From Epithemia pelagica (lineage: Eukaryota; Protista; Bacillariophyta), in NCBI GenBank assembly GCA_946965045.2, contig OX337229.1, positions 3,162,001 through 3,226,000 on the forward strand: a stretch of DNA of 64,000 nucleotides. Direction: 5' to 3'. The stretch's first letter is position 1; each line of letters opens with the position of its first letter. Position numbers and translations under genes: made by a program. The notes below the pieces were generated by a model. That model worked only from the letters and a program-made list of their open reading frames with translations. It was not told the DNA's origin and did not search any database. Of the stretch, positions 6,896 to 28,748 are shown one piece after another.

Positions 6896-8067
6896 ATTTA
6901 CTGCCTATTGATATGAAAGTGGATCAACAGAGATCTACACTTTCTCTAATCTGCCTTTAGGAGAAATCAGGAAACCCGAGACCTTTCGGCCGAGCTGCAG
7001 CCTACAGCATAGCATGGGTAGGCTAGAGAGATGCTTTGCATCACACAACCAAAACCACATCCCGCTCCTATTTTTTCGCTGAAGAGAGAGTCGTCTGTCT
7101 TCAATTTGATATTGAGCAGTTCTAGAGGTATGACTTTAATTGTTAGACGTCGTCTATATTAGATTGCCATCGACCAATCATGCAAGCCCAATTAAATTTC
7201 ATATCTTTACGGTATTCCATTGCAACGATTCTTGGGACGATATCTGGAGTCTCATTTGCCAATGTACGCTTTTCCGATCTTTCATCACTGAATAGTTAGT
7301 GATGACCGCCCTCTTCGTCATGATGATGACCTCCGGAATGTTCCCAAGGAAAGCGCAAGCCAATCAAGACTTCACCATCACAACGAATTCGATGAAAAAC
7401 CCAGAGCCACATTACGACCCCGATAAATTCGGAATACATTGTGAGATTTTCATCGACATACATGAATTTTCTCTCACTGAAATTCGAAAGACGGAGTTAT
7501 GAAAGCAACATGTGGTGAGAAACGCAAGCGAAGCAGCAGTCTTTCTGCGACCGTGATCAAGACCTGACACCTACCCGCCACCCATTCTTCGAATCGCCAT
7601 GTGGTTTGTCGACTGCATCGTTCTGTGCAGCGGTTTTCGAAAAAGCGCGCTATTTACTGCTCGAGAGAACATGGTCGGATGCTTTTTGTTTTTGCTTGTT
7701 GTGGTCCGCCCTTGATGCTTGATGTGTCTCTGTGTTGATGCGGCGCTGATTTATGGACGAAGCTTTATCTCTAACGCTAGTGAGCACTCTACCCACATTC
7801 GTCTTCGTCTTCTATTTTAGGCTTTGCGTACCCCAAGCGTGTCCTCCGCCTCTTATCGTCTCATTCACGAATCCGTACGACTCATAGGGAATCCAAATCT
7901 GTGCGGTCGCGGATTCTCTCCAGAGTCCAGAGATGCCAATAATCCGAGAGAAAAGAACCGAGTCCTGCAATACGGAACAACCGAAAGGGATAGAGTGACC
8001 AAGACGAACCCGCCGGACGACTATCCCCGTAAGCATACCCTCCCGCGCCCCTGCCCCCCTCTCCACG

Positions 8068-11000: not shown

Positions 11001-11469
11001 CCAGAACACCTTCTCCACCCTCTCGTCCACCAACCGCTACTCCGTCCTCGGGGAACGCCCAGACGACTCTTACAACGAAGAGTACGACCGGTACCATGGA
11101 GGAAACCCAAACGATGTAGAGATGGACGAAGAAGAACCCGACAAATGGGATAACATGTCCGAATCCGGCCGTTCCCACCCCCTCCTTCAACCAGACAACG
11201 ACAACCAAGCAAACAACCCCTCACAGAACACGGCAGATGAACTACACCAGATCGCCGCCTTCGTGCACCAGCACAACAGCTCTCAACTCCCCGCGTTAGA
11301 GGAATACATAGAGAAAATACAGTCCTTTTCGACGGACACCGACGCGAAAGACGTCTGGGATTTTGCGGAGCGGCTCGTAAAGCAGAAACGGCCGCTCGAT
11401 TCCCACGTCGCCGGCACCCGCACCGGCCATGTGGACCCGCATGCGACACAGGGCCAAGGGGCCAAATGA
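8068..11469 (+). CDS. Retrotransposon ORF1 (1133 aa; low-complexity T/N/P-rich flanks, structured core ~9500-10600)
   Basis: Long uninterrupted ORF whose TGA overlaps the next ATG (ATGA at 11466-11469). Confidence 0.75.
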   Translation: MVESADPPWALPVNPTSPHPTVKTRTMPFGLAPIRAPPPIQDDRLPSRRANNNNTMDKLHGLRYCNRNKDNSRQRRHGRTPPLATTQNTPIAKSRRPTAPPATPGQQRAKTTTPPRSKQPATEPKASHDDNKPRRHQPTMPDPSKPGHLRNTTKSVATQTDNRYSDNPPRRHPTVDMASIANKHHRKNEHTHPTSSNPLTMPNRFKSSLEINENTTPTGTQAASMQAHSKLAHSSRKKPASAMLRSATTRSQTGAHKKGGTAPDEANPNQQAIQGNTTLAAVNRREQDVNPITPDPVQRKKNQNIHSTKKPTEKNPEKEQQNNQNNTTATNTPNNNQHPHNQAHNQEENTNNDTNTHNQGENTNNETNNDNTTAAEATNPNHDTDNTANTQDDINRHTSNTATPPRRFHHSNRITTAHTTPPHDNEAYATTDHDDDGQDIDDTTNATPSTTTPLPPPIRNPYKSPTTKPLTHSGTSNKDPPAAIHLNLVVRHKANHQEEAALPRITETALKQHFNQVFKHHEPREDPMWLRVHRVEFIETKQPARTKGNNDKGPRGHSSSFHLTLSPAPANDAFDMENYLEQALRFATQMWHKHHRDDFRNDEHGAQWILRHGAQQSNPTLNPRFKEFDIYIPACNNRIATTQGIIAGIPAIAVKHRRGYLDITTTIHDHLFGHLPSQFQLFDDFSQHFGCRDGTFSGDLRNKQRGQVPVIYFSASSRHNFELFLRAYNKFHQAAKGNEITWRENALQILPIPKNQQTRTTTLEALKDLDQHFGASVRIRLYPLNDLATESEWDELTEIPHYQAAYPEFTHHDPEPIAYYLHLLRTPDTHHLNATTIRNYPGFPTNILRPTMASTVAAPPAPGQENTNNELTQQQATHTSRLLDLTRRITQRNQINGENQSGESTTTTTPTRPRSTTPTTPPPRKRSAPSTDTPTTNDNEHNSDPYEDNSNWTTVADTAARIIHNRYNQDDYEINADSQNTFSTLSSTNRYSVLGERPDDSYNEEYDRYHGGNPNDVEMDEEEPDKWDNMSESGRSHPLLQPDNDNQANNPSQNTADELHQIAAFVHQHNSSQLPALEEYIEKIQSFSTDTDAKDVWDFAERLVKQKRPLDSHVAGTRTGHVDPHATQGQGAK

Positions 11470-14400
11470 GCACCACAATCAGACCAATACGGCGCTGCCC
11501 AGTCCCGAATTGCGACTGGAAGCCCACATCCAACAACAACCACAACAACAACCATAAAGACACCGTTCTCCAACTCAAACAACACCTGATACACTCCCAC
11601 AACGACACCCCCATCACCGAGCACATGGACGAAGCATACTTTCAACGACACGACATGCACGTATGCCTGCAGTGCAATCAACCAAGCACGATTTACACGA
11701 CACAAGGACACCTACGAAACCATCAACAAAATAAACATACTAGGACAATCACCAATTTACAAATAGTTCTCAACACCTACAGACACGCCGATGATACCAC
11801 CAAAACCAACTGAAAAGCAGCCATCGAGTTCCTCCACGGCCTCAATATCACCCCACCACCACTTCGACGAACAATGTGGCACAAACTCAAACAACCACAG
11901 CGGAAAGAATACTTTGTCGCGTACAACAACGCCGTCACTTGGATTCTCGAAGCCACACCACCGCTGAGAGAAGACCTGAAAAGAGAAACCAGACCACACC
12001 CGGGACAATCAGACGCCACTCCCTTCTGGAAACTGATCCTGATACTAGAACCGCTTCTGCTCGCACCAACGTCTATCACCGGCCACAAAAGACCATCAGA
12101 CGCGCTCCGTGCGCGCCACCAATTAATCAAAGAAGGAAAGCTACGGGATCTATACGAAGCCATCTGGAACCCCAACCCCGAATCCACCCAACCCAGCCAC
12201 CATACAACAGCGAATCCAGCCATCCGGAACCCCAACCCCGAATCCACCCAACCCAGCCACCATACAACAGCGAATCCAGGCACCAACCACCACTCCCATC
12301 CCACATCCAACAACGCCACCCAGACGACAACCACGATACCACCAGGCAGGGTGGCAGCAGCACAACGAGCCGCCGACGTGGGGAACTATTCCACCGCCTT
12401 CAGCCGGCTCACCACTCACATGCCGACAGCAACACTGACCCCACAGCGAATTGAAAAAATCAGGACCGACCTCTTCCCACCAAGACGGGACCCCCCACCA
12501 ACTACCAGACACCAAGGCCACCTCCACCGCCCTCCTCCCCCGAGCCAATTCATGCAAATCGACAGCGGACAGTTCGAGCTGGCCCTCCGACAAATGAAGA
12601 CAGGCACAGCCTCCGGCCCATTCGCGGCATGCACCGACGCCCTTGTACACATGGCCCTGCACCGGACAACCCGGGCGCCCAACTCAACGAGGCCATACTT
12701 CAGCAATCTACAACAACTCTTCCAACTCCTCGTCACGGCGCAACTCCCCCCGGCAATACACCTCATTCTAGGAAGTAACTACTTCCTGGCACTCCACAAA
12801 GACACCAACAACCTGGAAAGACTGCGACCCATCGGAATAGGCACCGCCCTACGCAGACTCACAGCAAAAGTTGCCCTGGTCCACGTCTCCGAAACCGTCC
12901 GCCCCCTTCTGATCGCTGGCGGACAATACGGAATTCAAGTCCAAGGCGGAATTGACTTTGTCGCCCACACAACAACAGCGGCCGTCCACCGATACATCGA
13001 AGAGCCCCAGACGCCAACGCGCGCGCTCCTCCTCCTCGACCTCCACAACATGTTTAATAACACCTCGAGGACGGAGGCGCGTAAAATACTCCTGCACAAC
13101 GAAGCCACGGCACCGCTCATCCCTCTTTTTGACATGCTGACACAGTCAGCCACCCCATCATGGTACTTCAACGAAAACAATGCATCGGAAAAACTCATGC
13201 AAACCGAAGGCTTCCCCCAAGGCTGCCCCCTGAGCCCGCTATTCTCCTGCCTCGTTTTGAAAGCTCTCACAAACAGGATCAACACAGAACAACGACTCCG
13301 CGCGGCAGCAAGACTCAAAAACGACAACACATACGACGACGGCAAAGGAGGCCAGGCACACACTGCCTCCATCATGGACGACACGTCCATATGCCTCCCC
13401 CACGAGGACCTCCCTTGGTTCATTCAGCGGTTCGAAGAACTAGGGAAACCTCTGGGGGTCGACCTCAACAAACAAAAAACGCTCATTCTCACCACTACAA
13501 CAGGCACCTCACCCACCGACTCCCTCCCTGCCGAAAACAAACAATGTCTCCTCCAGGCCCTCGCGATGCTCGACCCCCTCCACCCCGAGCAACGCGAAAT
13601 CACGGGAGGCACGAGATTTCTGGGCCAACCCATCGGTTCCCAGGATTTCGCAAAACATTTCATCAACTTACGACTCCGAGCCATGGCAGCCAAAATGGAC
13701 CTCCTGGCGCACCTTCCCGACCTCCAGACACGCAGCCACCTGTTCCGCTATTCGGTGGTTCCATCCATTCTCCACCTTCTCCCAGCGGACATTGTACTCG
13801 CCCACCCAGCACCACAAATCACCACCACCCAATGGCGCAGCCCAACGACGGCAGAAACACAACGCCTCGTCACCAAATTCCTCTCCCAGGTCACGGCCCT
13901 CCCCACGGACGACATCACGACCACAGCCACTCTCATCGCGTCTCTGCCAAACCGTCTCGGCGGACTCGGTTACAACGACGCCTCGGCGGCAGCAAGACCC
14001 TCCATGATCACCCAAACGGCCCGAACAATCAAACTGGCGGCCTCCACCGAGACTCCGGTCCCTGGACCACACAAACACTTTTGGTCAGACTGGGAACACA
14101 GCGACCTCCCATGGCTCGTCACTTACCGGCGCTCCATCGCCCTATACACACACGAATTCGCTCCAGACGCCATCAGCAACCCAGCACACTTCGACCGCAC
14201 CACACATCGTAACCTGCTCCATCATACCATGGTGGAACACACCGTTCCAGCATTGATAGAAGCCACTCCACCAGAATTGCGCCCCTCCCTCCCTTCGGCC
14301 CTTTCTCCCCTCACGAGCCTCGCGCTACACCTCCCCAGAACCGCCGAAGCCTTTCGTCTCGACAACGCCACCTTCTCCACGGCAATCAAACGTAAACTCC

Positions 14401-15392
14401 GCCTACCCGTCTTACCCGTTTCCCTCCGTGGACACAGGTGCACATGCCCAGCTGCTCCCGAGTTGGATCCAGAAGGCGACCATTTCTTTTCTTGCGCAGC
14501 CGCCCACAAAACCGCCCTTTCTAACACCATCCGCGACGCCGTCTTTGACGTGCTTCAGCACTTGGCCCCTCAGGCCGGCATCGTCGAAGACCACCGAGAT
14601 GTCCACATTGAGCCGCCTGGTCTGGCTCCCCAGCACTCACGCAACATTCGACCCGCGGACGTTGGTTTATTGTTGCGTCAACCACACAAGAACGAGCCTT
14701 TCCAATACGTGGCTCTCGATGTTACCATTCCTCCTCCACCGACACGAACGCCCATTCCCGACCCGGCCGACCACAACGCCCTTGCCTCCGCCGCTTCAAG
14801 GCCGCATCAGGAATCAGCGCGCTCCAAGTTCTGTCGAGATGACGACACCGCTTCGCACCTCCTCCGCAACGGTATCTATCTTCTTCCATTCACTATCGAT
14901 CATTTGGGCTCCATGGGCTCATTTGCACAATCCTTCCTCTTCCATCAAGATGATCTGCCACACCCATTCTCCTCCGCCGTCCCCCCTTCATGGCCTGATA
15001 CCCACTTCGGACGCAACCAAACAAGATCCAAAACTCATCCAGCCGCCTTTGCACTGTACGAACAATTACCGGCACTCCCTGGCAATCTCGCCGCCAAAGC
15101 CAACAACAACACCCCCGGTTTTTCATTTCCGGAAGCGCACATCAACTCCATCGGTCATTTTGCGAGGGCCTCTTTATCACACGCAATTGTTTCCTCTCTC
15201 GCCACACATCTAAACAAACAAATTTCCACACTTCGAGCAACTGAATACAACAGCCGTATACAAAAAACCCAGAGGGCAAGACTTGAAAGAATGGGCTTTG
15301 CCCCACTTCCCGCCCTATACACCCCTTTCTCACTAGCAAACTTCTTCCCTTCCCACCACCCACCCCACCAGATAGGCGGCCCCGCCGCTTAG
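11466..15392 (+). CDS. Retrotransposon ORF2: two C2H2 zinc fingers, reverse transcriptase, Cys/His knuckle and restriction-like endonuclease; one in-frame TGA at 11811-11813
   Basis: ORFs 11466-11813 and 11874-15392 share a frame. Motifs: CPVPNC..HLIHSH, CLQC..HQQNKH, LRPIGIG, LDLHNMFN, GFPQGCPLSP, SIMDD, FLGQPIG, CTC..GDHFFSC, RPADV..ALDVT. Confidence 0.9.
12159..12278 (+). repeat. 60-bp tandem duplication inside retroelement ORF2
   Basis: Two copies differing at one base; they encode AI(W/R)NPNPESTQPSHHTTANP twice. Confidence 0.95.
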
Positions 15393-15485
15393 CAGCACAC
15401 GCACAACACTAGCTAACTAAAATAAAAAAAAAAAAAAATTCGACGACAAAAAGATAAAACGAAAGGGTCGGCCCATCCAAACATC

Positions 15486-16967
15486 ATGGTTCATACCCTC
15501 TCATTGGCCACTGTATCGTGTTCGACTTTGCAAACGCTCCTTGTCCTAATACTTCTGGGGGAAGGAGAAGCTCTTGTCTGTCCACAAAAGATTATTGGAT
15601 GCCGTATATCTTCTTCTTGTGATGGAAGATACCAACATGATGTTTTCAGGGGCAACAGAGAATCAAAGTTTGCTTCTATTCCATACACCGCCGCTCGTCG
15701 TCCAGCGAATCCATCTATGCCATCCCTAAGTTTGGCTCCTGTTTCCGCCATCCAGTCTATTCTACATAATGATCGGTCGTTTTGCTTGACAGCTGTCCTC
15801 ATGCTAAGCACCTTTGGAATCTTTCTGGAGCGACGAACATTGGTTGGCAAGGCTTTGTCTGCTCCTCTTGCAACAATGGCAGCTGGATTGATAGTCGCCA
15901 ACATTGGAATCATTCCCTTTTCTTCACCGATCTACGCGGCAATCAATACATATCTAGTTCCGCTTGCCGTCCCCATGCTATTATTTGACAGCAATCTACG
16001 CCGTGTTTTCCGGGACACAGGACCTTTACTGGCCGCGTTTGGCGTTGGTGCGATGGCAACGATGGTTGGTACACTGTTGGCCTACCCTCTCCTTCCGATG
16101 AGGTCACTGGGAAGCGACGGGTGGAAGGTTGCATGCGCTCTTGCAGCAAGACATATTGGCGGAGCGATCAACTTTGTGGCAGTAGCCGAAACCTTGAGTA
16201 TTTCCAGCACAGTCGTTTCTGCTACGATCGCAGCTGACAACGTTGTTGTTGCGCTTTATTTCTCCTTTTTATTTGCCATATCCAAACACGGGGAAAACGA
16301 TTATGCTGACAAATCGAGGATGGAAGCTAGCACTAATTCGGAACCGTCAAAATCAGCAACGAATGACTGGGCTGAACAATCACCACAAGATGGGGAAAAC
16401 GCAGTCAGTGACTCGTCGACTTTCTCACTTCCTATCATGGCTTTAGCACTATGTGTATCCTCTGTTCTGGTAACATGTGGTGGGATTTTGACAAAGATGC
16501 TTCTCCCTCCAGGTACCTCGGCTCTTCCGTTGACGTCGGTCTTGACCGTATTCTCTGCCACCGTATTTGCTCCGTTCTTTTCCAAGATTCGAGATGCAGG
16601 TAACCCACTCGGTATTTTTCTCATTCAAATGTTCTTTGCTGCATCTGGAGCAGCCGGATCAATCAGGCTAGTGATGCAACAAGCACCCTCACTTTTTGCA
16701 TTCTCATCCCTTCAAATTGCAATTCACTTTGGATTCATCATGTCCGTTGGTCGACGACTGCTTCGTATGGATTCTCGCAACCTGTTCCTTGCTTCGAATG
16801 CTAACGTTGGGGGACCTACGACTGCAGCGGCAATGGCTCAGGCGAAGGATTGGAAACGATTGGTTCTTCCTGCTCTTCTTGTCGGTATCCTTGGTTACTC
16901 TACAGCTACAGCGCTTTCTCTTGCTTTAGGGCCAATTCTGCTGAAACTACCGACAGTAGCCCCATAG
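15486..16967 (+). CDS. DUF819-family multi-pass membrane protein with N-terminal targeting peptide
   Basis: YLVPLAVPMLLF, LAARHIGGAINFVAV and LASNANVGGPTTAAAMA, plus many hydrophobic helices. Confidence 0.85.
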   Translation: MVHTLSLATVSCSTLQTLLVLILLGEGEALVCPQKIIGCRISSSCDGRYQHDVFRGNRESKFASIPYTAARRPANPSMPSLSLAPVSAIQSILHNDRSFCLTAVLMLSTFGIFLERRTLVGKALSAPLATMAAGLIVANIGIIPFSSPIYAAINTYLVPLAVPMLLFDSNLRRVFRDTGPLLAAFGVGAMATMVGTLLAYPLLPMRSLGSDGWKVACALAARHIGGAINFVAVAETLSISSTVVSATIAADNVVVALYFSFLFAISKHGENDYADKSRMEASTNSEPSKSATNDWAEQSPQDGENAVSDSSTFSLPIMALALCVSSVLVTCGGILTKMLLPPGTSALPLTSVLTVFSATVFAPFFSKIRDAGNPLGIFLIQMFFAASGAAGSIRLVMQQAPSLFAFSSLQIAIHFGFIMSVGRRLLRMDSRNLFLASNANVGGPTTAAAMAQAKDWKRLVLPALLVGILGYSTATALSLALGPILLKLPTVAP

Positions 16968-17023: not shown

Positions 17024-18744
17024 TCAGTTCGCTATCCGTCTTCCGTCAAGCGCAAGGTGGCGAATAGAATGCTTGCCAAGTATGGCGACTGCGCGTCTAT
17101 GGGCATATGGAGCACTAGCTCTGAAAATGTCGAAATCAGGGTCTCCAGAAAGAGCAATTCCTTCCAAAAGACCAAGGCCTCGAGTGACCAGGGCAAAGAA
17201 GGGGGGGACACTGAACGGGTACTTAAAGAAGACCTCGTTCAGCTCATTCGACACATCCATCAGTTTCTTTTTGCGTTTGCGTAGATCTGATCCGCCCTCC
17301 ACAACTGCAACAGTGAGAATTTTTTGGATGAGAGGTTTAAGGTCTCTCGAATCGAAGTCGTGTGGAAGAAAACCCAATTCAATTGCATCTTCTGATACCA
17401 AGGCTTCGAAATCCCTAACTAGCAAATGGACTATGGCCTTGGTGATGGCATTTCGTGACTTTTCGTCAACTTTCGTACATAGTCCGAAGTCAAGCAAACA
17501 GAGCTTTCCGTGCCGATCCACGAGGAGGTTACCAGGATGAGGGTCAGCGTGGAAGTTTCCCATGTCCAACAGTTGTGTTAAAAAACTGGTGATTGGGGAT
17601 AAGAATCAGTCGAAAAATGGTGAGAAAAATCCGCAGGCAAAGTTTTTAGGACGATCCATGAACTTACAGTTCCACGCCAACAGGGATCAATTTACGAATC
17701 TGATCGCGAGATGAATCCGCAAGCTTGACGCCATCAATCCATTGAGATGTAAGCACACGTTCCGTTGTGAGATGATTATATACACGAGGTATGGTGACGT
17801 CACATTTTCGTCGTTCGAGTTCGTTCTTAAATTTGGTTTGGTTTGCGGCTTCTTCGCAATAGTCCAGTTCTCCATAGCTACCAGAGGCGAATGATTCGTA
17901 GAGAGCTTTATGGAAAGGAGGTTGGTTTGTCAATACTGAAGTAAAGCAATCAACCATCACTCCCAACTTTTGAAGTAGATACAGGTCCAGACTAAAGGAC
18001 CTCCTCATATTTGGCCGCTGTACTTTTACCGCCACTTCTTCCCCCGAGGATCGAAGTTTCGCCTTGTAAACCTGACCCAACGAAGCTGAGGCAACAAGCT
18101 TGACATCTTGGAACACCTCATCTATATTTGCTATATCCAGCTCTGTCCGAATCACATCCATTGCTACGTCATCCGATACAGGTCGTACTGCGTCACACAG
18201 CTTCTGAAGCTCTTTCAAAACTGAGGGTGGTACAAGGTCTGGTCTGATGGAAAGCTGCTGGCCAGCTTTCACAAATGCAGGTCCGAGATTTGTCAATGCT
18301 TCCCTAAGATCCGAAGCGTGCTTTTTTTGGAGTGAAATGTTTTCCTCGAGGGTCCTGTGTTTGTCCGAGATTTGTCAATGCTTCCCTAAGATCCGAAGCG
18401 TGCTTTTTTTGGAGTGAAATGTTTTCCTCGAGGGTCCTGTGTTTGATAAGAACAAAGTCTCTGAAATAACCAGCAGCCAGAGGGCTAAGTTCCTTCAGAA
18501 TGGATGCCAGACGTTTCACGGTGGTCACTGGACGACATGACCAGTAATGGTTCAGCTGATCCCAATCATATTTACGTGGGAGAGGCTCCGTCGAGCGGTT
18601 CTCGTAGTGATATTCAGTCGAGTAGGCTCCCGTGACAACCCCAACTCCCATTAACGCTCCTGCAGAAGTTAATGGGTAACCCCCGAGAAGACGAACGGTC
18701 CTCGAAGCCATCGTTGAGATATCCACCTTTGCGTCTTTGAACAC
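17024..18744 (-). pseudogene. ABC1/AarF atypical kinase, frameshifted by an 82-bp tandem duplication (or an assembly artefact); intron 17586-17667; 5' start unresolved
   Basis: LGPAFVKAGQQLSIRPDL, ASASLGQVYKA, VAVKVQRP and FHADPHPGNL..LLDFG are present. The upstream frame ends in a premature stop inside the duplicated segment. Confidence 0.8.
18281..18444. repeat. Exact 82-bp tandem duplication
   Basis: gtccgagatt...gtcctgtgttt occurs at 18281-18362 and again at 18363-18444. Confidence 0.95.
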
Positions 18745-19420
18745 CTATCTTTGTGAGTCATTCCACAACAACACGCTCAAAAAGTGGTCGATATTTCGCC
18801 TCTGCGCTTTGCGTTCCGAGTGGACGTGGTTTTTCGGCCGCTGATTCGTCAGACAACGTCAGTTTTGCTCTTGGTCGTGGTCTTCTTTCAATAGTCGTAC
18901 AACGTACTCCTACCTCCTACTCCTTGCCATACCCATGTAAAATAGCACGGTATAAAAATTGTGATCTTTAGGAATTACGAGGAATTGCTAGGGGGAATGA
19001 GGAATCCACAGTGCCACTGCCACGTGCGACGAGAAATGACTGCAACTGCTGGAGGAGGAACAGCCAGATGGCGGAAGATTCATGTCGCAGTGTCAAGAAC
19101 GCGAACCGGGAATGGAACGTGGCGACACGTATGGCGAGATCCATATAGGGGTACCGCACTCCTACCTTACAATACTCGTAGAGGATGTAGGAGTATGATG
19201 CATTTTTGCAGGTAGCTAGACACCAGCTGGGTAGAGTAGGTAGTACGGAAGTACGGAAGTTTGACCATAGTACTCCTACTCCCGCTTTGAGATAAGTTTC
19301 ATTGAATATTGGTTTCAACGTTTCGCCCTCTTTAGAAGCCATGTTAACATGCGGAGCTTGATGCGGAGCTTGCAACGTCTTGTGCTGTATCAGCTTTCTG
19401 ATCCTCATTCTCGCGAAGGC

Positions 19421-20407
19421 CTACTTTTTGCCTCCTCTGAAAGACATCATCATGCGGACTTTGTTTACCGACTTTCGTGCTACTCGATCATTTCCGTCCT
19501 TACTGGTATTCTTGAAGTTAGTGAATCGTTTCGAAGAATTCAGCCCAACTTTCGCGTCCTTCTCATCTTGCGCTCCAATTTCACGAGCACGTTTCGCAGC
19601 ATCGACCGAGGTCTTCAATCCAATCGACCGAATTTTTTCCCAATCAAGATCTATTTTTCCTTTGATTCTTTGTTTCCTTGTCTCAGTGACTATGTCCTGC
19701 ACATGCTTGATTCGTGCACTTTCTCGTTTTTGATCATAGACAATAACTTCCTCCAGACCTCTCAAAGTGTTTTCTTTCTCGTCGAAAGGCATTCTCGACT
19801 TCTTGTGTTTCTCCCACCGGAAAGTTGTTAATTCAACATCTGCGTCACATCTCCGAAAATCCTCATCCTGCATAAAATAGGCCTTCAACTCAGCCTCCGT
19901 GAAGGCGTCCCCTTCATCTTTATGGATTGTCAAATCGTCGTCGACTTTAACTTTCCGATTAGCCAAGTCCCCGGCTGTTGGGGAAGGATCTGGGTGGGCA
20001 TGGCTGCGTTCCGACCGATTGGCGTAGCTTGCGAACTCGTCGTAGCGATTCATACTTCCTCGCAGCTGTGATGGGTCAAACCCATTTGATCCCCGCTTTA
20101 GATTGTTAATACTCTTCAGTGCCGCGTTTGGGTCACTGTCCTCAGAATTTGCAGAGCCATTTTCGACGACCTCTCCATCAGCTAAAGTTTGTTCGACGGC
20201 TGATTTTTGTTCACTCGATTGTTTCTGTTTTTCTTCCTCAACCGTCACCTTTTTTATTGTTGGGGATTGACCGCCCTTATTTTGAACAGTCACCGCGGCA
20301 TCATCTTGATTCTTCCTTTGTGAATTATCTTTCAGCACGGATTTTGAGCTTCCCTTTGACTTGTCTTGTTTCCTTAGACGTCGACGAAACATGTCACTGG
20401 TGGACAA
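19421..20407 (-). CDS. Hypothetical protein (disordered N-terminus, helical C-terminal domain with RGLE motif)
   Basis: 328-aa ORF. The C-terminal RGLE...D.D.EKI...S..A...A..IG..DE pattern resembles a common diatom family of unknown function (from recall). Confidence 0.65.
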   Translation of the reverse strand: MSTSDMFRRRLRKQDKSKGSSKSVLKDNSQRKNQDDAAVTVQNKGGQSPTIKKVTVEEEKQKQSSEQKSAVEQTLADGEVVENGSANSEDSDPNAALKSINNLKRGSNGFDPSQLRGSMNRYDEFASYANRSERSHAHPDPSPTAGDLANRKVKVDDDLTIHKDEGDAFTEAELKAYFMQDEDFRRCDADVELTTFRWEKHKKSRMPFDEKENTLRGLEEVIVYDQKRESARIKHVQDIVTETRKQRIKGKIDLDWEKIRSIGLKTSVDAAKRAREIGAQDEKDAKVGLNSSKRFTNFKNTSKDGNDRVARKSVNKVRMMMSFRGGKK

Positions 20408-20757
20408 GTGTGGGGCACAAGCGAATCTTGAAAACGTTCAGTCTCTCTCTGTTATCTCGAATCCGCATCTGACATCCAAACAAGTAGAGCCGGTGCCTTT
20501 GAACACAGAAAGAGATGCGTCAACAAATGAGACAGTCTGATATCCTCACAGAGAAATCGGTAACAGAAGCAAAAGTCACGAGATGAAATGTTTTTCAGGA
20601 AGCAAGAAGCAAAGATGCAATATCCTTCGTGTAATGATTCTCTCTTCTCCATTCGTTGTCTGATTATTTTTTCTGCCACCGGTAAGGATACTTTTGCTGT
20701 TACCCCCAAGCACCGGGTGAGTGTGAATCCCGCCTGAGTCGGAGAAAATGTGCATTC

Positions 20758-23058
20758 GTGTTCTCACCCCCATGGCGCGTCCTCCAAATTTGGCGATTTC
20801 TCGGTGTTGATACAAAATCATTTGCACCTCAACGCCTTCACCGCGGATCCAAACTTGTGAGGCCAAGTGCATCAATCATGGACCCTTCCAACCCATTCCA
20901 ACGCTTTTCCCAGGAACCTAACACTATCGAAGAGCTATCTACGACGTCACTGGTACCTGCAACGAACCAATCTGTATCAACTGCAAACGTTCTATCGGCC
21001 CTCCGTCATAACAACAACGACGACAGTGATGACCATGCAACAAACTCCCATGAGCCCTCTATTCAACCCGTCCGACCCGCTTCCCCTACTCCTTCCAATG
21101 TCCCTTACGCCTTACCTCGACTCGAGCAGGCCATCTTGCTGTCCTTTACAGATTGGCATGGGAAAACAGCAAGGCCATGGCAAGTGAATGCTTGTGGAGA
21201 AGTGATCAAGCGCCACACCATCCAACCTACAGTCTCTCCCATCCTGCGTCCCGTCCTTCTTGTCCGCTCCACTGGTGGTGGCAAATCTGCGGTGAGAGAT
21301 GTATCCGGTTTCCTTTGCGGAGGGATATCAATAACTATTGTCCCTTTACTAAGCTTGGCAGCGGACCAGACTTCGAAGTTAACCCACCTGTCTCTGTCCC
21401 AAGGCCTCCATCACCGCCTTCGAGTGTTCAACCTTGATGTTATCCGGTCCGAGAAGCTGAATACCCTACTTCGCAACCATCTCGAACAACTATCAAGCAC
21501 TGACGCATCCAAAAAACGTGTTTTCTTGTTCACTTCCCCACAGAAAATCACCAACAATCCATTGTGGCAGCAAACCATTGCACGATGTTGTCACAATGGC
21601 TCTCTACGCCTGCTTGCGGTCGATGAGTGCCATTTATACGCGACACATGGGATGGAATTCAGAGCAGAATTTGCAGAGTTGCGAAAGTGTCTATTCAAAA
21701 CCATTACACGGCAATCAAAGATTCCCCTACCCGTGCTGTTTATGACAGCTACTGCATCATCTGCAATGGTGGAGGACTTACAAACGTTGACTGGATTGAG
21801 GTTTGATGTCACCCAAGATCTTATCTGGCCCAATCGTCATTCTGGCGTCCACCGCCGCAATATTTGTCTCGATTTGTCGTTCAAGGATACTGCCCTTAGA
21901 CGGATCAAGGCAGAACTCATCAAAACATGTCAATCACCAAATGGCCAAAAGATTATTGTTTATTCCAACTCCCGGAAGGCAATCCAAAATCTACATAAAA
22001 ACTGCCGCGCGGAGCTTAATCGCCTTGCCATTCAAAAAGATATTCTCTTGGTGCATGGAACAATGTTCAGGGAACAAAAGTTCCATCACACCAACCTCTT
22101 CGTTGGGAAACCATTATCTGACGAATGTCCCTCGACGGGACGCACATTGCGGTTTGATCCTATTGCACTGTTCGCAACTGCCGGAACTGCAAGTTCCGGG
22201 ATCGACTGTGCTGATGTACACAAAGTTATTTTTCATGGAATTCCCACCAGTCTCCAAGATCTACTCCAATGTTCTGGCCGTTGTGGCCGGAGTCCTACGG
22301 CGACTCCTGCGGATTCCTCCTTCACCATTATATTCTCCTTCAATAGTCTTGTGTCCCTAATGACACGAATCTTCATCATTCCTAAATATGAGGAATCACA
22401 GAAGAACAAGGATTCCAATACAAGTACAAGCAACAATGACCAAGACAGCAGCAGCCTCCATTCAAAGCCCTCTGCCATCAATACTCTTTCTTTTGATGCG
22501 CTTGCCACACGCCACTGGACTAATCTTTTGCCTGTTCTTTCCTTATTATGTCTCAACAAAGGTGGTTGTATTCATTATCAGCTGGAGCAGGCCATGCTAC
22601 ATCCATACCATGAAAAGGTATGCGACATGGCAGTTTGCTGTGATGGTGCGTGCTGGCGATGTGCAAGCCCTCGAGTTTCGACTCCATTGGACGGCCGAAT
22701 CGACAAAGACGCGTTGCAGGACTATTTTGTGCAGATCTTTATCACAAGGAAGCTTTCCCCAGCAAAGCTTTCACTGCATAAGGAATGCTTCCTTAACGAG
22801 TTGCTACAGTACGAAACCTTGGGACCCGACGGTGAACCAACCAAAGTGTTTGCTAAAAGGGTATTCCGTTTGAAGGACAAACGAGCAGCACGTCAGCGTG
22901 CCAAAGCCTTACTCCTAAAATGTTTTGCCTCTGAAATCCTCCAGCCTGAGATCGATGGCTTTCAACTAAGAGCCAAACTGGGTTACTATGCGACAGGAAA
23001 CCCATGGATGAATTGCGAAGAGGTTTGGGCTGGATTCAACCTCTTCCCTTCTACTTAA
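20758..23058 (+). CDS. RecQ-like SF2 DNA helicase (element-encoded; true start may be ATG 20878)
   Basis: Motif I RSTGGGKS, Ia IVPLLSLAADQ, II AVDECH, III MTAT, V ASSGIDCADV, VI QCSGRCGR, and a C-terminal Cys cluster. Confidence 0.9.
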   Translation: MFSPPWRVLQIWRFLGVDTKSFAPQRLHRGSKLVRPSASIMDPSNPFQRFSQEPNTIEELSTTSLVPATNQSVSTANVLSALRHNNNDDSDDHATNSHEPSIQPVRPASPTPSNVPYALPRLEQAILLSFTDWHGKTARPWQVNACGEVIKRHTIQPTVSPILRPVLLVRSTGGGKSAVRDVSGFLCGGISITIVPLLSLAADQTSKLTHLSLSQGLHHRLRVFNLDVIRSEKLNTLLRNHLEQLSSTDASKKRVFLFTSPQKITNNPLWQQTIARCCHNGSLRLLAVDECHLYATHGMEFRAEFAELRKCLFKTITRQSKIPLPVLFMTATASSAMVEDLQTLTGLRFDVTQDLIWPNRHSGVHRRNICLDLSFKDTALRRIKAELIKTCQSPNGQKIIVYSNSRKAIQNLHKNCRAELNRLAIQKDILLVHGTMFREQKFHHTNLFVGKPLSDECPSTGRTLRFDPIALFATAGTASSGIDCADVHKVIFHGIPTSLQDLLQCSGRCGRSPTATPADSSFTIIFSFNSLVSLMTRIFIIPKYEESQKNKDSNTSTSNNDQDSSSLHSKPSAINTLSFDALATRHWTNLLPVLSLLCLNKGGCIHYQLEQAMLHPYHEKVCDMAVCCDGACWRCASPRVSTPLDGRIDKDALQDYFVQIFITRKLSPAKLSLHKECFLNELLQYETLGPDGEPTKVFAKRVFRLKDKRAARQRAKALLLKCFASEILQPEIDGFQLRAKLGYYATGNPWMNCEEVWAGFNLFPST

Positions 23059-23091
23059 TCTGTATTACTGAGACGTTTAAAATAAAAATAA

Positions 23092-26000
23092 TTACGTTAA
23101 TGCGTTCCTGAACTGTTCTAAAGCCTCCAATGATCGATCCAACACACAATCTTGATCGTCATCCTCCGACATGGGATCCATCCATCCCAAACTATCCCCA
23201 TCATCCTCCATTTCTTCCAGCCTTACGTACAACTTGTATCTCAGAAAATGATCTTCTCTCTCCTTTCGTTCGACATCCTTCCCTCTAGCTGTTATAACAT
23301 TCTTCTCGGCTATTTGCTCGAGTGCCATTGCAACAACATCTTTTGATGCTGTTGCGTTCATAGGAACGACCTTCATCCCTTTCACTGCAGCCTTTTCTCT
23401 CAGTCCGTCGACTTGGTCCTTTGCAACACTGTCCTCTCCTTCTTTGGTCTCGTCGTCTTCCTGTGACGTACCATCTGCAGCATCCTCATCACCTTCGAGC
23501 GAATGAGTATCCTCAACATCCTCTGGTTCTTCCATTAATTCTGCTGCTTCCTCTTCTATAATATCTTCGATTTGGGTTTCTGGAACCTGTTTGTCGTCCT
23601 CTGCGATCTGTTCATCGTCGTCTTCCAACACGGTTACTTCTTGGCTATTAGTACAGCATTCTTTGTCATTCTCCCCCTCGTTGTCCGATACAATCTCAAT
23701 ACTTGGTTGGGTACCGTAAATTGAGGTATCATCCAGCATTTCAACAACAGCAACTGATTCGTTTTCGCTAAAATAGGAGCGATCTCCCAATGACGCTTCC
23801 GCATCCTGGTCTTTCATGGCCTTAGTCAGGTCTATTTCCTCCTCATTTTCATTCTCTTCAACCTCCATAGTATCTGCCTCATGGTCGTCACGGGCGGTGT
23901 CTTCACTTACGCCTTCATTCTTTGCCTTCGAAAGGGGACCCATCATTGACTGCGCCTGACACAAGACATATTGGTGGGTAGTATCTGCCTCGGCCTTACC
24001 ATCGCCACCGCAGCGTCGCAGCTTCTTCTGAACTTTGAGAGTGGTCATATCCAGGGCTCTCCAAAAATGATCGTGATCGATTACGATGCAAGCATCACGA
24101 GGGATTTCATGACATTTTGCCAGAACAAGCAATTCCATCACCAATACCCGGTTTACTTTACTCTTCGGATGTGTTGTACGTTTGTTTCTCTGGCCAGGGT
24201 CAGCAAGTGCTTCATCACTATATTTGGTCATATTCTCAGACTTTCCCTCTTCCTTCACACGTTCTGCAAGTTCTGCCAAACCATCCGATCGATTACGGGT
24301 GTAGAACTCTACAAAATGCTTAGCCCGCTGACAAGCAGTAAGCATTTGCGAGACCTTGATAAACGACGCTTCGGTTCCAAGATGGTTCATGCCCTTGAAA
24401 AAGGGCATGAGCCTCTCCATGATCTGATCTAAGGCGCTTTCCTTCTGGAAGGCAGATGGCACACTCCCGGGCTTTTGTCGTTTGGTTCTGTTCAATCGGA
24501 GCTGTTGCAGAATTGAAATAGGAATTCCATGGTAATATACCTCCATAAGGCGAATCTGTGTATTGAATGAGTTCCGCTTGCCTGTAATGAAGAAGTAAGG
24601 CAAGTACTCGACGACCATGGCCTCCATTGAGATGGCATCACCATGTTGTTCCGCGTCAAGAAATCTCATATACTTCTTACAGATCAACAGGAAGTTGCAG
24701 ATGTACCGCCTCAGCCAGTAGGGACTCTCCCGAACCTCCTGGTTCAAGAAGGCCAAATATGTCTTGGCGAGGTAGACAGCCAGTTCCTCTCCGCCATTTT
24801 CACCTTTCGGTAAGTCGTCGAGTTTTTCCTGCTTGATGGAATTGCAAACCAATACATCGAGCATAAGTCGGTCTAGCTCTTCGTAGACTATTGCAACCAA
24901 CCGGTGACAGAGTCTGTAACTATTTGATACGTCAACCGGGTCGAGTTGCTTCCATTTTAACCTGTGCTGAAAGCACTGCAAGAATCCACCATAGAAAAGT
25001 CTGTAGATGGATTCTAGCATGTGAAACCTGACGTGCAGATCTCCTGTAACGGGCACAACTCGGTGTATCACACTGGATATTGCCATGGCTTGGCGATAGG
25101 CCTGTCGGAAGGATACTGTTTTCGAATCTGTTATCGCCATCACGTCATCGAAAAATTGGAAGATACGATCGATGGACAAGCCATCACCAACAATAAAGAG
25201 CCATTTATCCATCCATGAAGCACCGGGTTTGTAGATGTGATTTGCTTCATCCCATTCCAGTAGACCATGGAGGTTCATAAAGTCAAGGACTACCCCGGAC
25301 GCTCCGACTTTTGTCGTTTCGTCTAACACAGATACTGGTAGCATCAACAGCTCTGCAACGGGGGGGAGGTGCCGCCACGTTCGAACTACTTGCGACGGAA
25401 ACTGTCGTGCCATTGTGAATATGTTAGTATCGCGATTCTTTCGGAGCCGGTTCATGGAAATATTTACTGTCGCTCGTTTGGGGCACATGGCAAATTGGAC
25501 CGGCTGCATTGTGTAGTAGACGTCTTGTCCTCTACGCCCGAGGGACAGGCAACGTTTAATGGTACGCAATTCAGCGCACCATGAAACCATTTGGACGTAA
25601 GTCCGTACACGAGTTCCCGAGCAATCAAAAGGATTTCCATCGCGTTCTAGGTCTGATCTGTATGTACCACGGAATACCGAAGCAATAGTCTCGGTAAGAG
25701 AAACATGGGTACCATTCCGATTCAATTCGAAGGCGGGCATGTGGTATGGCGCCGGAATATCTTGTTGGATGTATGTCATGACCGGTCGGGAAAGAAATGA
25801 ATATACCCATGAAGGTAGCCTTTCAAGGTACATTGCCATGACAAATCTGGCTGTCACTCTCGTGTAGATTGTACTTTGTCCACTCTGAAACTGTAGTCGC
25901 CGACCGTCCTGCAGATTGTCAAACACCGCAAGAAGAGTCGTGACGTTTCTCAACGATCGTCGGACCTTGTTATCGTAGGTTCGAAGGCATTTGGCAACAC

Positions 26001-28299
26001 GCCGTTCCATCGTTCGTTTAGAGACTGCAATTCCAAACCAGATTGGAATCTGTAGAGCTAGCATGCCATGCCCACAAGCATACTGGGCCAAGGAGAATAT
26101 CATGCCAAATGGGACAAGCAAATGGTTGTTGTGTTTTCTGGCTCGGACAACGAATTGAAACAAAGCGTCAAGGGAGTAGCGTTTTTGGAGGAATCGCTTG
26201 TCTGTGGACGGTGCATCGTCTATCTTTTTCGTGTAGCCGCTCATACCCATTATTGCATTAAATTGTTGAGGAAGTCGTTGCTCAAATTGCGTCGTCAACT
26301 CGCGCAGCTCGTACTCCGAGAGGAATTTTTCGAAAATATTGTTGAATCGTCCGAAGCAGTCGTCGAGTCGTTTGTTCAACTTTTCGTCCAAGATTTTGCA
26401 AAACTTTGGAACTATTTCGGAATCGACGAGAGGGGCAGGCACAAAGGACTGTAATGCTGCTTCTTTCTGAATGGCAGCGATCTTCTCTTCATATTCCACT
26501 TTCGTCTTAGAAGCATCCTCTTGGGCTTGTAAACGTTCCCATACGCTCTTCAACTCGGCCATCATGTACCTGTCACCTTGAGTTTCTTGTATAAGTCTGT
26601 GAAACAGGGTCAGACGATCGTCGCCCTTTCCTTTCATTTGTTTGAAAATGGTCATCCAACTACGCTCAGGATGATAGTCGGCCTGTATAAACACGCCTTG
26701 TGGATAGGTATACAACTCGAACCACGAGATCAGTTTTTGAATACAGTCTCGAGGTGGGAAGGCAATGTTGCAATCAATGGCAGAGAAGACAGGAAAGCGA
26801 AGGTAGATCCCGTTGTGGTTGAACTCAGACATTGCTTCCATGACTTGATCGTAGGTTTTCACGCCCTCCTCAGTTATTTTCTTTTTCGTCGCTTGATTAT
26901 TGTCAACCCATCCAGACAATTGCTTGTAAGGCCGTCCTTGACAAGAAACAGTCGGCAAGAATTCGGACTGACATGTTTCTCGCCAAAGAGTCAACAACCG
27001 CTTGCTATACCGTGGAGGAAGGAGGGATTCGTCAAAAAAAAGAACAATCGCGGTCTCCTTTTCCAAGAACCATATATCCTCAAGGAGTAGAGTCCTCAAT
27101 GAAAAGGACGTGACCACATGTATTTGATTGTTTTGTTCGTTCGGTGAATCGGGCAATGCTGCTGTTTCGGTAGTAGAGGAAGGTTCTACGGAATCACTTC
27201 GTTTCCTTTTGGTGCTTGATAGGCGATTGTAGCGACGTTGTTTGTTTGTTCCGGTCGTTGACCGAGATACACCAGCCGTGAAGTTTTTGGCTTTTTGCAT
27301 AAGTTGCGAACAATGGTTGGAAGCCAATGAGAGAGCTTTGGGGTTGTCCGCCGTAGGAGCAACAATGATCAAAGGTGGATGGAGCTTGATGGATTGTCCG
27401 GGGTTTAGGCAAGGGAGGGGTGGTTGCTTACGCAGAGGAAGGAGGTACGTCCCCTCTGTAATCTGTCTCACACTGACTTTCAGGTTTGGGTATTTCGCCT
27501 GTTGAGGGTGGACTCGTCCTTGCACAGGTACAGATGGTGTGGTAGGCGGTAGGCCATTGTTGGTAGAAGGTTCAGAAGGAGGGGGAACGGCCGTTGCAAC
27601 TGTGTACTCGGATGCAATCTCAGTGTTGTTGTTTGTTGCCGTAGCAGAATCGTTGTTGGTGTTGTTTGTTGTGTCGGGAGCGTTGTTGCTTCTTTCTGGT
27701 TGGTTGTTGGCCTCAACCGCTCGTGACATATTCAAAGGCTTTGGCGGCGAAGATTGAGTACCAAACTCGATTTGTCCAAATGAATGACGACGGTGTAGCA
27801 GGTTGAAGGACAATGAAGAGGCACCTCTACGGCTTGGTGGAACGGTAGCGGTCCAAGCAACATCAGGCGAAGGGCGGTCGGGATTATCTTGGGATGGCAC
27901 AGAATGGTATCTAAAGCGGAGACGATGTGGCGCGGGTTGGGTTCGCTCCGAGGGAATCGTTGAGAGCAAACTAGCAGCGGCACTGTCAAGGAAGCCTGAT
28001 GGTTCTGATTTCTCTTCGTTTGCGTCCACGCGTCCTGCTGCTGCATTTGCCGATGGGGTTTCGTAGAGAGGAAGAGACGACGTGGTCACTTGGACAGATG
28101 AAGGGAAGGGAAACGGATTGGATGGGGATGCTGATGGAGGATTCAGCTGCTGTGATGATGCGTTTTGAGTTTTGGCGATGCTGTTGCTTCTGCCTTCTTG
28201 CGTTGACGTTTGGGATGCTCCCGGTACACCTTGCGCCGCAAAAGCTCTTCGTGCTTGCTTCTGAGAGAGGCGGTGCTTTCGGTGGGAAGATGAAGACAT
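23092..28299 (-). CDS. 1735-aa DUF6589-like protein, putative transposase of the element
   Basis: Uninterrupted ORF with AVFDNLQ, FIVGDGLSIDR, VTGDLHVRFHML, GDAISM..YFFITGK and LDQIMERL, similar to DUF6589 signatures as I recall them; acidic C-tail. Confidence 0.7.
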   Translation of the reverse strand: MSSSSHRKHRLSQKQARRAFAAQGVPGASQTSTQEGRSNSIAKTQNASSQQLNPPSASPSNPFPFPSSVQVTTSSLPLYETPSANAAAGRVDANEEKSEPSGFLDSAAASLLSTIPSERTQPAPHRLRFRYHSVPSQDNPDRPSPDVAWTATVPPSRRGASSLSFNLLHRRHSFGQIEFGTQSSPPKPLNMSRAVEANNQPERSNNAPDTTNNTNNDSATATNNNTEIASEYTVATAVPPPSEPSTNNGLPPTTPSVPVQGRVHPQQAKYPNLKVSVRQITEGTYLLPLRKQPPLPCLNPGQSIKLHPPLIIVAPTADNPKALSLASNHCSQLMQKAKNFTAGVSRSTTGTNKQRRYNRLSSTKRKRSDSVEPSSTTETAALPDSPNEQNNQIHVVTSFSLRTLLLEDIWFLEKETAIVLFFDESLLPPRYSKRLLTLWRETCQSEFLPTVSCQGRPYKQLSGWVDNNQATKKKITEEGVKTYDQVMEAMSEFNHNGIYLRFPVFSAIDCNIAFPPRDCIQKLISWFELYTYPQGVFIQADYHPERSWMTIFKQMKGKGDDRLTLFHRLIQETQGDRYMMAELKSVWERLQAQEDASKTKVEYEEKIAAIQKEAALQSFVPAPLVDSEIVPKFCKILDEKLNKRLDDCFGRFNNIFEKFLSEYELRELTTQFEQRLPQQFNAIMGMSGYTKKIDDAPSTDKRFLQKRYSLDALFQFVVRARKHNNHLLVPFGMIFSLAQYACGHGMLALQIPIWFGIAVSKRTMERRVAKCLRTYDNKVRRSLRNVTTLLAVFDNLQDGRRLQFQSGQSTIYTRVTARFVMAMYLERLPSWVYSFLSRPVMTYIQQDIPAPYHMPAFELNRNGTHVSLTETIASVFRGTYRSDLERDGNPFDCSGTRVRTYVQMVSWCAELRTIKRCLSLGRRGQDVYYTMQPVQFAMCPKRATVNISMNRLRKNRDTNIFTMARQFPSQVVRTWRHLPPVAELLMLPVSVLDETTKVGASGVVLDFMNLHGLLEWDEANHIYKPGASWMDKWLFIVGDGLSIDRIFQFFDDVMAITDSKTVSFRQAYRQAMAISSVIHRVVPVTGDLHVRFHMLESIYRLFYGGFLQCFQHRLKWKQLDPVDVSNSYRLCHRLVAIVYEELDRLMLDVLVCNSIKQEKLDDLPKGENGGEELAVYLAKTYLAFLNQEVRESPYWLRRYICNFLLICKKYMRFLDAEQHGDAISMEAMVVEYLPYFFITGKRNSFNTQIRLMEVYYHGIPISILQQLRLNRTKRQKPGSVPSAFQKESALDQIMERLMPFFKGMNHLGTEASFIKVSQMLTACQRAKHFVEFYTRNRSDGLAELAERVKEEGKSENMTKYSDEALADPGQRNKRTTHPKSKVNRVLVMELLVLAKCHEIPRDACIVIDHDHFWRALDMTTLKVQKKLRRCGGDGKAEADTTHQYVLCQAQSMMGPLSKAKNEGVSEDTARDDHEADTMEVEENENEEEIDLTKAMKDQDAEASLGDRSYFSENESVAVVEMLDDTSIYGTQPSIEIVSDNEGENDKECCTNSQEVTVLEDDDEQIAEDDKQVPETQIEDIIEEEAAELMEEPEDVEDTHSLEGDEDAADGTSQEDDETKEGEDSVAKDQVDGLREKAAVKGMKVVPMNATASKDVVAMALEQIAEKNVITARGKDVERKEREDHFLRYKLYVRLEEMEDDGDSLGWMDPMSEDDDQDCVLDRSLEALEQFRNALT

Positions 28300-28748
28300 T
28301 GATAAGGTCGTTCACAGGCACCGTACCTCGGCCACCGTAATGAATGTGGTGAGATAATATGTGTGGTTTGGGATTTTGTATCAACACCGAGAGCTCAGGA
28401 TCGCGCCATGGGGGTGAGTATACGAAAGCCCTTTTTAAGTGCGACTCGTACCTCGCCCGGCGCTGGGGGGTACTTTTGCTGTGTGTGCTGTGTGCTGTGT
28501 GCGGCGTGATGCGTGATTCAAAGTTCAAAGGTCTTCTGCCTTTTGTACCGCAATCGCAGGGCGATCGGAACAAGGCAGGGCGGGGAGCAGATTCTCTTTG
28601 GCCACGCAAGAACACATACGGCAATTGGCAATGGCAACCAACACATTTCAGCCATCACAATCGGACTGATCAGAAACACCACAATATTCATCACTGTGTC
28701 ATCTTTACAAAGTTTTGTCCTTAAGTAAAGGAATTGTGAGTCAAGAGG

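Follow-up and report, generated by a model that had tools for sequence, protein, structure and literature searches.

AcademH elements were reportedly described by Kojima in 2020, from animals and fungi, as DNA transposons recognizable by terminal inverted repeats (TIRs), target-site duplications of 9–10 bp, a DDE transposase, and a helicase. Here we analyzed a stretch of 64,000 nucleotides of the diatom Epithemia pelagica (GenBank assembly GCA_946965045.2, contig OX337229.1, positions 3,162,001 to 3,226,000), referred to below as the window, with coordinates counted from its first base. It contains a 7,772-bp element with two genes, one for a RecQ-like helicase and one for a protein with a DUF6589 domain. 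The element is very probably an AcademH-type DNA transposon that is autonomous and was active recently, AcademH being the helicase-encoding lineage of Academ.

The duplications made by AcademH elements are 9 or 10 bp long and those made by AcademX elements 3 or 4 bp, and this difference has been linked to the encoded helicase or nuclease (PMC10045372). Academ elements have been found across most fungal taxa, with the highest abundance in Pucciniomycotina, and were without a Pfam model in 2017 (PMC5751038). The other known RecQ-carrying DNA transposons are of the KolobokH type. Kolobok elements make TTAA duplications and have 5'-RR...YY-3' termini, and Kolobok-1_CCri bears its RecQ helicase on the complementary strand (PMC9587614).

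The window element resembles AcademH in being bounded by TIRs, in making duplications of 9 or 10 bp, and in encoding a large predicted DDE transposase and a superfamily 2 (SF2) helicase. In contrast to AcademH elements described from animals and fungi, its host is a diatom, i.e., a stramenopile; its helicase is a separate open reading frame (ORF), convergent with that of the transposase and 33 bp away from it. AcademX elements presumably share the transposase superfamily of the window element, but they combine 3–4-bp duplications with an XPG nuclease, whereas the window element combines 9–10-bp duplications with a helicase. KolobokH elements and Kolobok-1_CCri are likewise DDE transposons carrying a RecQ-like helicase; however, the transposase of the window element is from a different family, and its duplications have no consensus. 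The resemblance to hAT (Hermes), P element, and RAG1/Transib enzymes is one of fold class, with no detectable sequence similarity, and those elements have other duplication lengths and no helicase partner.

Boundaries and Gene Content of the Element

The element proper occupies positions 20701–28472 of the window, with TACCCCC at its left tip and GGGGGGTA at its right tip, and thus with TA...TA termini. Its main features are listed below, where L001 is a full-length copy from another assembly and X4 is one of the runs of the same organism, both described in the following sections.

20691–20700, no strand: left copy of the target-site duplication, CTTTTGCTGT, kept as a single copy at the X4 empty site
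20701–20820, plus strand: helicase-side TIR, with 97% identity to the corresponding L001 end over 130 bp
20758–23058, plus strand: helicase ORF, uninterrupted, first ATG at 20878
20878–23058, plus strand: predicted RecQ-like SF2 helicase gene, 726 aa from the first ATG, with Pfam DEAD and Helicase_C matches
23059–23091, no strand: 33-bp spacer between the two convergent stop codons, from the ORF positions
23092–28299, minus strand: predicted DUF6589 transposase gene, 1,735 aa, intact ORF with a Pfam DUF6589 match
28353–28472, minus strand: transposase-side TIR with the same three conserved blocks
28473–28482, no strand: right copy of the target-site duplication, CTTTTGCTGT, directly adjoining the right terminus

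An earlier note on this DNA had reported an intact TIR element of about 7.8 kb with an exact 10-bp flanking duplication and two uninterrupted convergent ORFs 33 bp apart (20758–23058 on the plus strand and 23092–28299 on the minus strand), and we found all of these as reported. Its naming of the first ORF as a RecQ helicase agrees with the RecQ-family sequence and fold matches given below, and its naming of the second as DUF6589-like agrees with the Pfam match to this domain at aa 982–1241. The same note had described the TIRs as imperfect and 21 bp long. Inverted ends are indeed present, but the length has to be corrected, as these ends, although imperfect, align over about 120 bp once indels are allowed.

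Within the ends there is one exact inverted block of 21 bp (20799–20819 and 28372–28392), and the ends also share a 35-nt block that is 86% complementary and contains the exact motif CTCACCCCCATGGCGCG. Three end blocks are conserved in all subfamilies: the TACCCCCnAGC tip, CTCACCCCCnnGGCGCG at about positions 60–80, and TTGATACAAA at about positions 107–117. An insert, AAATTTGGCGATTT, is specific to the helicase-side end. The ATGs of the two genes are located 58 and 73 bp inward of the last conserved end block.

The CTTTTGCTGT 10-mer occurs three times in the window, as compared with 0.24 occurrences expected. The direct repeat can also be read as 12 bp, TACTTTTGCTGT, common to both flanks. 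We preferred the 10-bp reading, because only then are the termini symmetric (TA...TA), and because it agrees with the duplications of other copies. The insertion site is intergenic, about 290 bp upstream of a minus-strand ORF (19421–20407) and downstream of a PP2C phosphatase gene.

Recent Mobility of the Element

The element is a very recently mobile TIR cut-and-paste transposon. We conclude this because of an empty site in run X4, the differing 9–10-bp duplications of other copies, the presence of two copies that are 100% identical, and a 94-bp miniature element. The earlier note had taken the element for a recently mobile cut-and-paste transposon and had named an empty-site allele and copies with different flanks as the things to look for. 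Both turned up: the former in X4, with a single CTTTTGCTGT, and the latter at other loci, where a different duplication of 9 or 10 bp flanks each copy.

Four runs of the same organism (X1–X4) cover the region of the left junction, and were placed on window positions 18200–24100. A 2,423-nt contig of X4 matches positions 19201–20700 and then continues for more than 900 nt, beginning with CTGTGCTGTGTGCTGTGTGCGGCGTGATGC. The continuation corresponds to window positions 28483–28512 at 29 of 30 positions; the mismatch is a C where the window has G, at 28483, the first base past the duplication. The two flanks are joined in X4 via a single CTTTTGCTGT, as expected of an empty site. The X4 depth on the element was almost nil, and X4 is not among the runs with the transposase gene. 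The possibility that the X4 contig represents a spliced transcript was rejected, as no GT...AG boundary fits within the repeat.

The flank contigs of X1–X3 all end exactly at position 20700, and not about 30 nt into the repeat, as if they stopped at a graph branch of filled and empty alleles. This points to the presence of both alleles. In these three runs, the depth on the element was about 0.85 times that on the flank, a poor fit to a simple 1:2.

Other Copies and Their Target-Site Duplications

A word-indexed search with the large ORF as a query returned 12 paralogue clusters with 57–85% identity to the transposase, all from the ENA assembly ERZ21939226. This assembly may not be the genome of the window, as the window's own protein was absent among its matches. 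We fetched seven of the resulting loci (L001–L004 and L007–L009). In all seven, a DUF6589 ORF is followed by a convergent helicase ORF, and the copies are all bounded by TACCCCCnAGC...GCTnGGGGGTA. The helicase gene is damaged in three of them, being split in L009, truncated C-terminally in L008, and devoid of its N-terminus in L004. The duplications read directly at these loci were as follows.

L001, full-length copy: TGGAGCTCTC, 10 bp
L008 copy: GGCAATTGGA, 10 bp
L009 copy: CTAGGTGGTG, 10 bp
L001:460–553, 94-bp miniature element: CAAAACAACC, 10 bp
L004 copy: TTGGTTGCT, 9 bp
L007 copy: TGAGTCCAT, 9 bp

With the window element included, the duplication is 10 bp long in five cases (window, L001, the L001 miniature, L008, and L009) and 9 bp long in two (L004 and L007). 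The reciprocal L002 and L003 flanks imply two further duplications, each of 9 bp. All nine are 9–10 bp long, and their sequences are mutually unrelated. To this we added an unbiased scan of the window and all fetched loci for TACCNCC...GGNGGTA termini with 9- or 10-bp flanking direct repeats, which returned seven true elements only, with zero false positives. The explanation of the duplications as chance matches is ruled out by this outcome.

In the miniature at L001:460–553, two family ends adjoin each other back to back. Such an element is non-autonomous, and as a natural substrate it must have been mobilized in trans. The L002 and L003 copies (L002:7829–15637 and L003:7829–15637) are 7,809 bp long, 100% identical, and located on different contigs. 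Their flanks are reciprocally swapped: AATGGAGCG precedes and AGTGACCGG follows the element in one of them, and the reverse is the case in the other. Such a swap is the signature left when two copies that each have a 9-bp duplication recombine ectopically (by inversion or translocation), but a mis-join of the assembly across the identical repeat could also produce it.

The terminal 120–130 bp of the window element (20701–20830 and 28343–28472) are 93–97% identical to those of L001 (L001:7240–7361 and L001:14942–15071), whereas the ORFs of the two copies are near synonymous saturation (proportion of synonymous differences, pS, 0.56–0.64). The conservation of ends amid saturated ORFs implies either a very strong constraint on the ends or their exchange between subfamilies. 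Judged from the alignments, the pattern is one that would be expected of transposase-binding sites and promoters.

Some other observations were made at these loci. An extra family terminus is present upstream of the L008 copy, at a distance of about 800 bp (L008:4348 and L008:5001–5158), and may be a solo end or a remnant of a neighboring copy. The called transposase gene of L008 begins upstream of the true element end and is probably over-extended. The region beside the L003 insertion (L003:1–7500) is transposon-rich, with a piggyBac-like DDE_Tnp_1_7 ORF and retroelement ORFs (RVT_1 with rve; RVT_2).

The DUF6589 Protein as a Predicted DDE Transposase

The product of the minus-strand gene is the transposase of the element, with a predicted RNase H-like DDE core and a large helical insertion. 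About 400 aa at its N-terminus are of low complexity, its C-terminal tail is acidic, and DUF6589 (aa 982–1241) is its only Pfam match. An exhaustive phmmer search with aa 400–1450 as a query found 428 relatives in a representative library, many of them full length at 20–30% identity. DUF6589 relatives occur most often in Basidiomycota, Mucoromycota, and Cnidaria.

In 30 aligned relatives (down to 18% identity), the invariant residues are D794 and N795 (in DNxQ), E994, D1039 (in GDGLS), and G1086 and H1089 (in PGDLH). Additionally, D1291 and E1295 (in DxxxExxN) are conserved in every aligned sequence that covers them. We propose D794, D1039, and E1295 as the catalytic triad, located in the window as follows.

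24043–26385, minus strand: putative transposase catalytic region, aa 639–1419, with a predicted RNase H-like DDE fold and alpha-helical insertion domain
25918–25920, minus strand: D794 of the proposed triad, invariant alignment column
25183–25185, minus strand: D1039 of the proposed triad, invariant alignment column
24415–24417, minus strand: E1295 of the proposed triad, invariant alignment column

The AlphaFold2 model of aa 639–1419, made with a 55-sequence alignment, reached a predicted local distance difference test (pLDDT) score of 89.7 and a predicted template modeling (pTM) score of 0.90. In this model, D794 is in the first long strand, D1039 follows immediately after the fourth strand, and E1295 is in a helix that comes after a helical insertion of about 200 residues. 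Matches of the model obtained with VIA-align included Hermes, integrases, Tn5, P element, ISCth4, and RAG1, and the best of them were nearly all DDE transposases or integrases. Weak matches among the Swiss-Prot models were enriched for hAT-derived proteins. In the ESM Atlas and AlphaFold DB clusters, the model matched DUF6589 proteins of cnidarians, Mucoromycota, and Basidiomycota (template modeling (TM) scores of 0.6–0.74, E-values down to 4e-15). Its nearest neighbors outside the DUF6589 family were predicted bacterial transposases of the ISKra4, IS66, and Mutator families, with marginal TM scores by hit of 0.46–0.51. These neighbors hint at a possible prokaryotic ancestry of Academ-type transposases, with Academ perhaps derived from bacterial enzymes like those of ISKra4, IS66, or IS256. 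By analogy, a kinship with hAT, P, and RAG-type enzymes would permit a hairpin intermediate.

Several searches gave no match or weak ones. Foldseek found no significant match of the transposase model in PDB, and a profile search of the transposase alignment against PDB sequences returned chance matches only. When DUF6589 was skipped in a feature search of a protein atlas, weak leads to P-element/THAP9 emerged (score 0.69). Among 55 family members scanned against Pfam at E-values up to 1, there was no match to MULE, Transposase_mut, IS66, UPF0236, or any other transposase family. An XPG domain was seen neither in the window element nor in these 55 proteins, and a Pfam scan of 30 relatives likewise revealed neither an XPG domain nor another transposase family. 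A second word-indexed search, with the alignment, returned ERZ21939226 paralogues only and no distant relatives, and is therefore uninformative about XPG fusions.

The RecQ-Like Helicase as a Conserved Partner

The 726-aa partner of the transposase is, by its sequence and modeled fold, a predicted divergent RecQ-like helicase. All its SF2 motifs are intact, and the helicase core is followed by a conserved C-x-H...C-x3-C-x2-C stretch. The positions of these motifs are given below.

21274–21288, plus strand: helicase motif I, GGGKS
21622–21633, plus strand: helicase motif II, DECH
21745–21759, plus strand: helicase motif III, TATAS
22276–22290, plus strand: helicase motif VI, GRCGR (QxxGRxGR)
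22567–22662, plus strand: Cys-rich stretch of the helicase

A phmmer search of PDB matched the protein to RECQ1, BLM, RecQ, WRN, and RECQL5 (1e-11 to 1e-5). All of the top 50 Foldseek matches in PDB were RecQ-family catalytic cores, including that of E. coli RecQ (5.5e-16), and the fold alignments of the model, whose pLDDT is 63, covered more than 600 columns of such cores. Pfam found no match to RQC or RecQ_Zn_bind in this protein.

In three distant relatives of the element (L005, L006, and L011), a helicase gene is again convergent to the transposase gene. Their helicases are 27–31% identical to that of the window, and their transposases only 24–30%. The similarity of the helicases extends over the full length, including the Cys-rich C-terminal part, in L005 and L006, and over about 330 core residues in L011. 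In both genes, L001 is the copy most similar to that of the window, the other ERZ21939226 copies are less similar, and L005 and L006 are the least similar, with the middle order differing between the genes. Compared between the window element and L001, the transposase genes have a ratio of nonsynonymous to synonymous substitutions (dN/dS) of 0.083 and the helicase genes one of 0.085, and synonymous sites are nearly saturated. By these comparisons, the helicase gene is a core gene of the family, conserved, co-diverging with the transposase gene, and under purifying selection as strong as that on the latter. We rejected the idea that it is passenger cargo in view of the co-divergence, the matching dN/dS, and the convergent position kept in the distant relatives.

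Assignment to AcademH and Alternative Explanations

We assign the element to AcademH because its TIRs, 9–10-bp duplications, helicase, and DDE transposase match the description of this lineage. The duplications of 9–10 bp are present in the window and at the other copies. A helicase gene stands beside the transposase gene in the window, in all fetched ERZ21939226 copies, and in L005, L006, and L011. The ends of about 120 bp are inverted repeats, and the modeled transposase core with its invariant D794, D1039, and E1295 is of the DDE type. Moreover, the lack of an Academ model in Pfam in 2017, together with the fungal distribution of Academ, fits a later "DUF" model being that of this transposase, namely DUF6589. 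Literature supplements yielded no mapping of Academ to Pfam. The suggestion of the earlier note that the element is possibly unclassified was not upheld, as AcademH elements have been published with just these features. The diatom host and the functional reading of DUF6589 are new; the kind of element was already known.

Several points weigh against this assignment or against parts of it. The homology to named Academ transposases is argued from shared features and host distribution, and not from a sequence comparison with the Academ entries of Repbase. An AcademX-type relative, with the transposase fused to an XPG nuclease, was found in none of the 30 relatives scanned. The helicase scored 82.6 bits with the NCBIfam recQ_fam model, which is below the cutoff of 219.8, and the pLDDT of its AlphaFold2 model is only 63. 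Additionally, the case for current activity is made from polymorphism and intact ORFs.

An explanation that builds on the first of these points is that the element represents a separate unnamed DDE superfamily, in which a RecQ-like helicase and 9–10-bp duplications arose convergently with AcademH. Its relation to Academ rests on description and not on reference-sequence comparison, the Pfam label is merely DUF6589, the one paper that we found mentioning DUF6589 ties the domain to no transposon, and Foldseek found no significant PDB match for the transposase model. Nevertheless, four independent features (TIRs, 9–10-bp duplications, helicase, and DDE transposase) match AcademH, and the occurrence of relatives in fungi and animals agrees with that reported for Academ, so that we consider a separate superfamily unlikely. 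Mutator elements make duplications of about 9–10 bp, and a divergent Mutator-like (MULE or IS256-related) element with an acquired helicase gene would therefore produce duplications like those observed. However, this length is common to AcademH as well and does not discriminate between them. The protein of the window element has no MULE or Transposase_mut match in Pfam, and the 55 family members scanned at E-values up to 1 match neither these nor any other transposase family there, in agreement with the earlier note, in which no Mutator transposase motifs had been recognized. Moreover, the similarity of the transposase model to ISCth4 is weak and is outscored by that to Hermes, integrases, Tn5, and P element, and ISKra4 and IS66 models score equal to Mutator ones, as if the similarity reflected the general DDE fold. 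A Mutator-like origin is thus very improbable.

To KolobokH, the other known type of RecQ-carrying DNA transposon, we give hardly any credence. It does encode a RecQ helicase, which in Kolobok-1_CCri is on the complementary strand, but all nine duplications are 9–10 bp long with unrelated sequences, and the termini are TA...TA and not RR...YY. The length and the sequence of the duplications exclude KolobokH, and the earlier note was right in setting Kolobok aside for want of a TTAA duplication. It could also be argued that the window element is an old, fixed, and immobile insertion, the two genes of which have been domesticated by the host, as both ORFs are under purifying selection, and so are domesticated genes. 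Against that, X4 carries an empty-site allele, the flank contigs of X1–X3 stop right at the insertion point, two copies of 7,809 bp are 100% identical, the 94-bp miniature has its own 10-bp duplication, and intact TIRs with perfect duplications are present at many different loci. Domestication is therefore extremely unlikely, and the AcademH assignment is the one that we follow below.

Proposed Mechanism

On the AcademH assignment, each gene would be transcribed inward from its own end of the element. The transposase would bind the conserved blocks of both ends, pair the ends, excise the element, and join its 3' ends to target strands staggered by 9–10 bp, and gap repair would then produce the 9–10-bp target duplication. 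The helicase would most likely act in trans, as an obligatory accessory. RecQ helicases act in resection and junction dissolution. While cleavage takes place, the helicase of the element may open up or reshape DNA, either that of the transposon ends or that beside them. Another possibility is that it channels the donor break into homologous repair from the homologue or sister chromatid, with the element being retained.

Other Features of the Window

Positions 8001–16000 of the window are of unusual composition, with a GC content of 0.53–0.58, a GC skew of about −0.3 to −0.39, and an AT skew of up to +0.55. This region contains two long plus-strand ORFs (8068–11469 and 11874–15392), the second of which has an RVT_1 domain, and is therefore probably a retroelement.

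Significance

The finding extends the host range of AcademH to stramenopiles. Academ is among the least studied superfamilies of DNA transposons, and our literature searches turned up no transposition assay or structure for it. It also presents a puzzle: its helicase lineage makes 9–10-bp duplications, while its nuclease lineage makes 3–4-bp ones. The window provides a recently moved intact element in a culturable unicellular alga, with defined ends, a proposed catalytic triad, intact helicase motifs, and a miniature substrate.

DUF6589 gains a functional reading as well; a fungal pan-genome preprint treats this domain as a possible "virulence factor". Annotation of this genome should treat both ORFs as transposon genes to be masked, rather than present them as a host RecQ or as proteins of unknown function. 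We advance only tentatively, as a possibility that we hold to be somewhat doubtful, that the family is live in the diatom now, with DUF6589 as the Academ-type DDE core; if so, AcademH would for the first time become experimentally tractable outside animals and fungi. With a live family, one could ask what makes a RecQ-like helicase of its own necessary to a DDE transposase.

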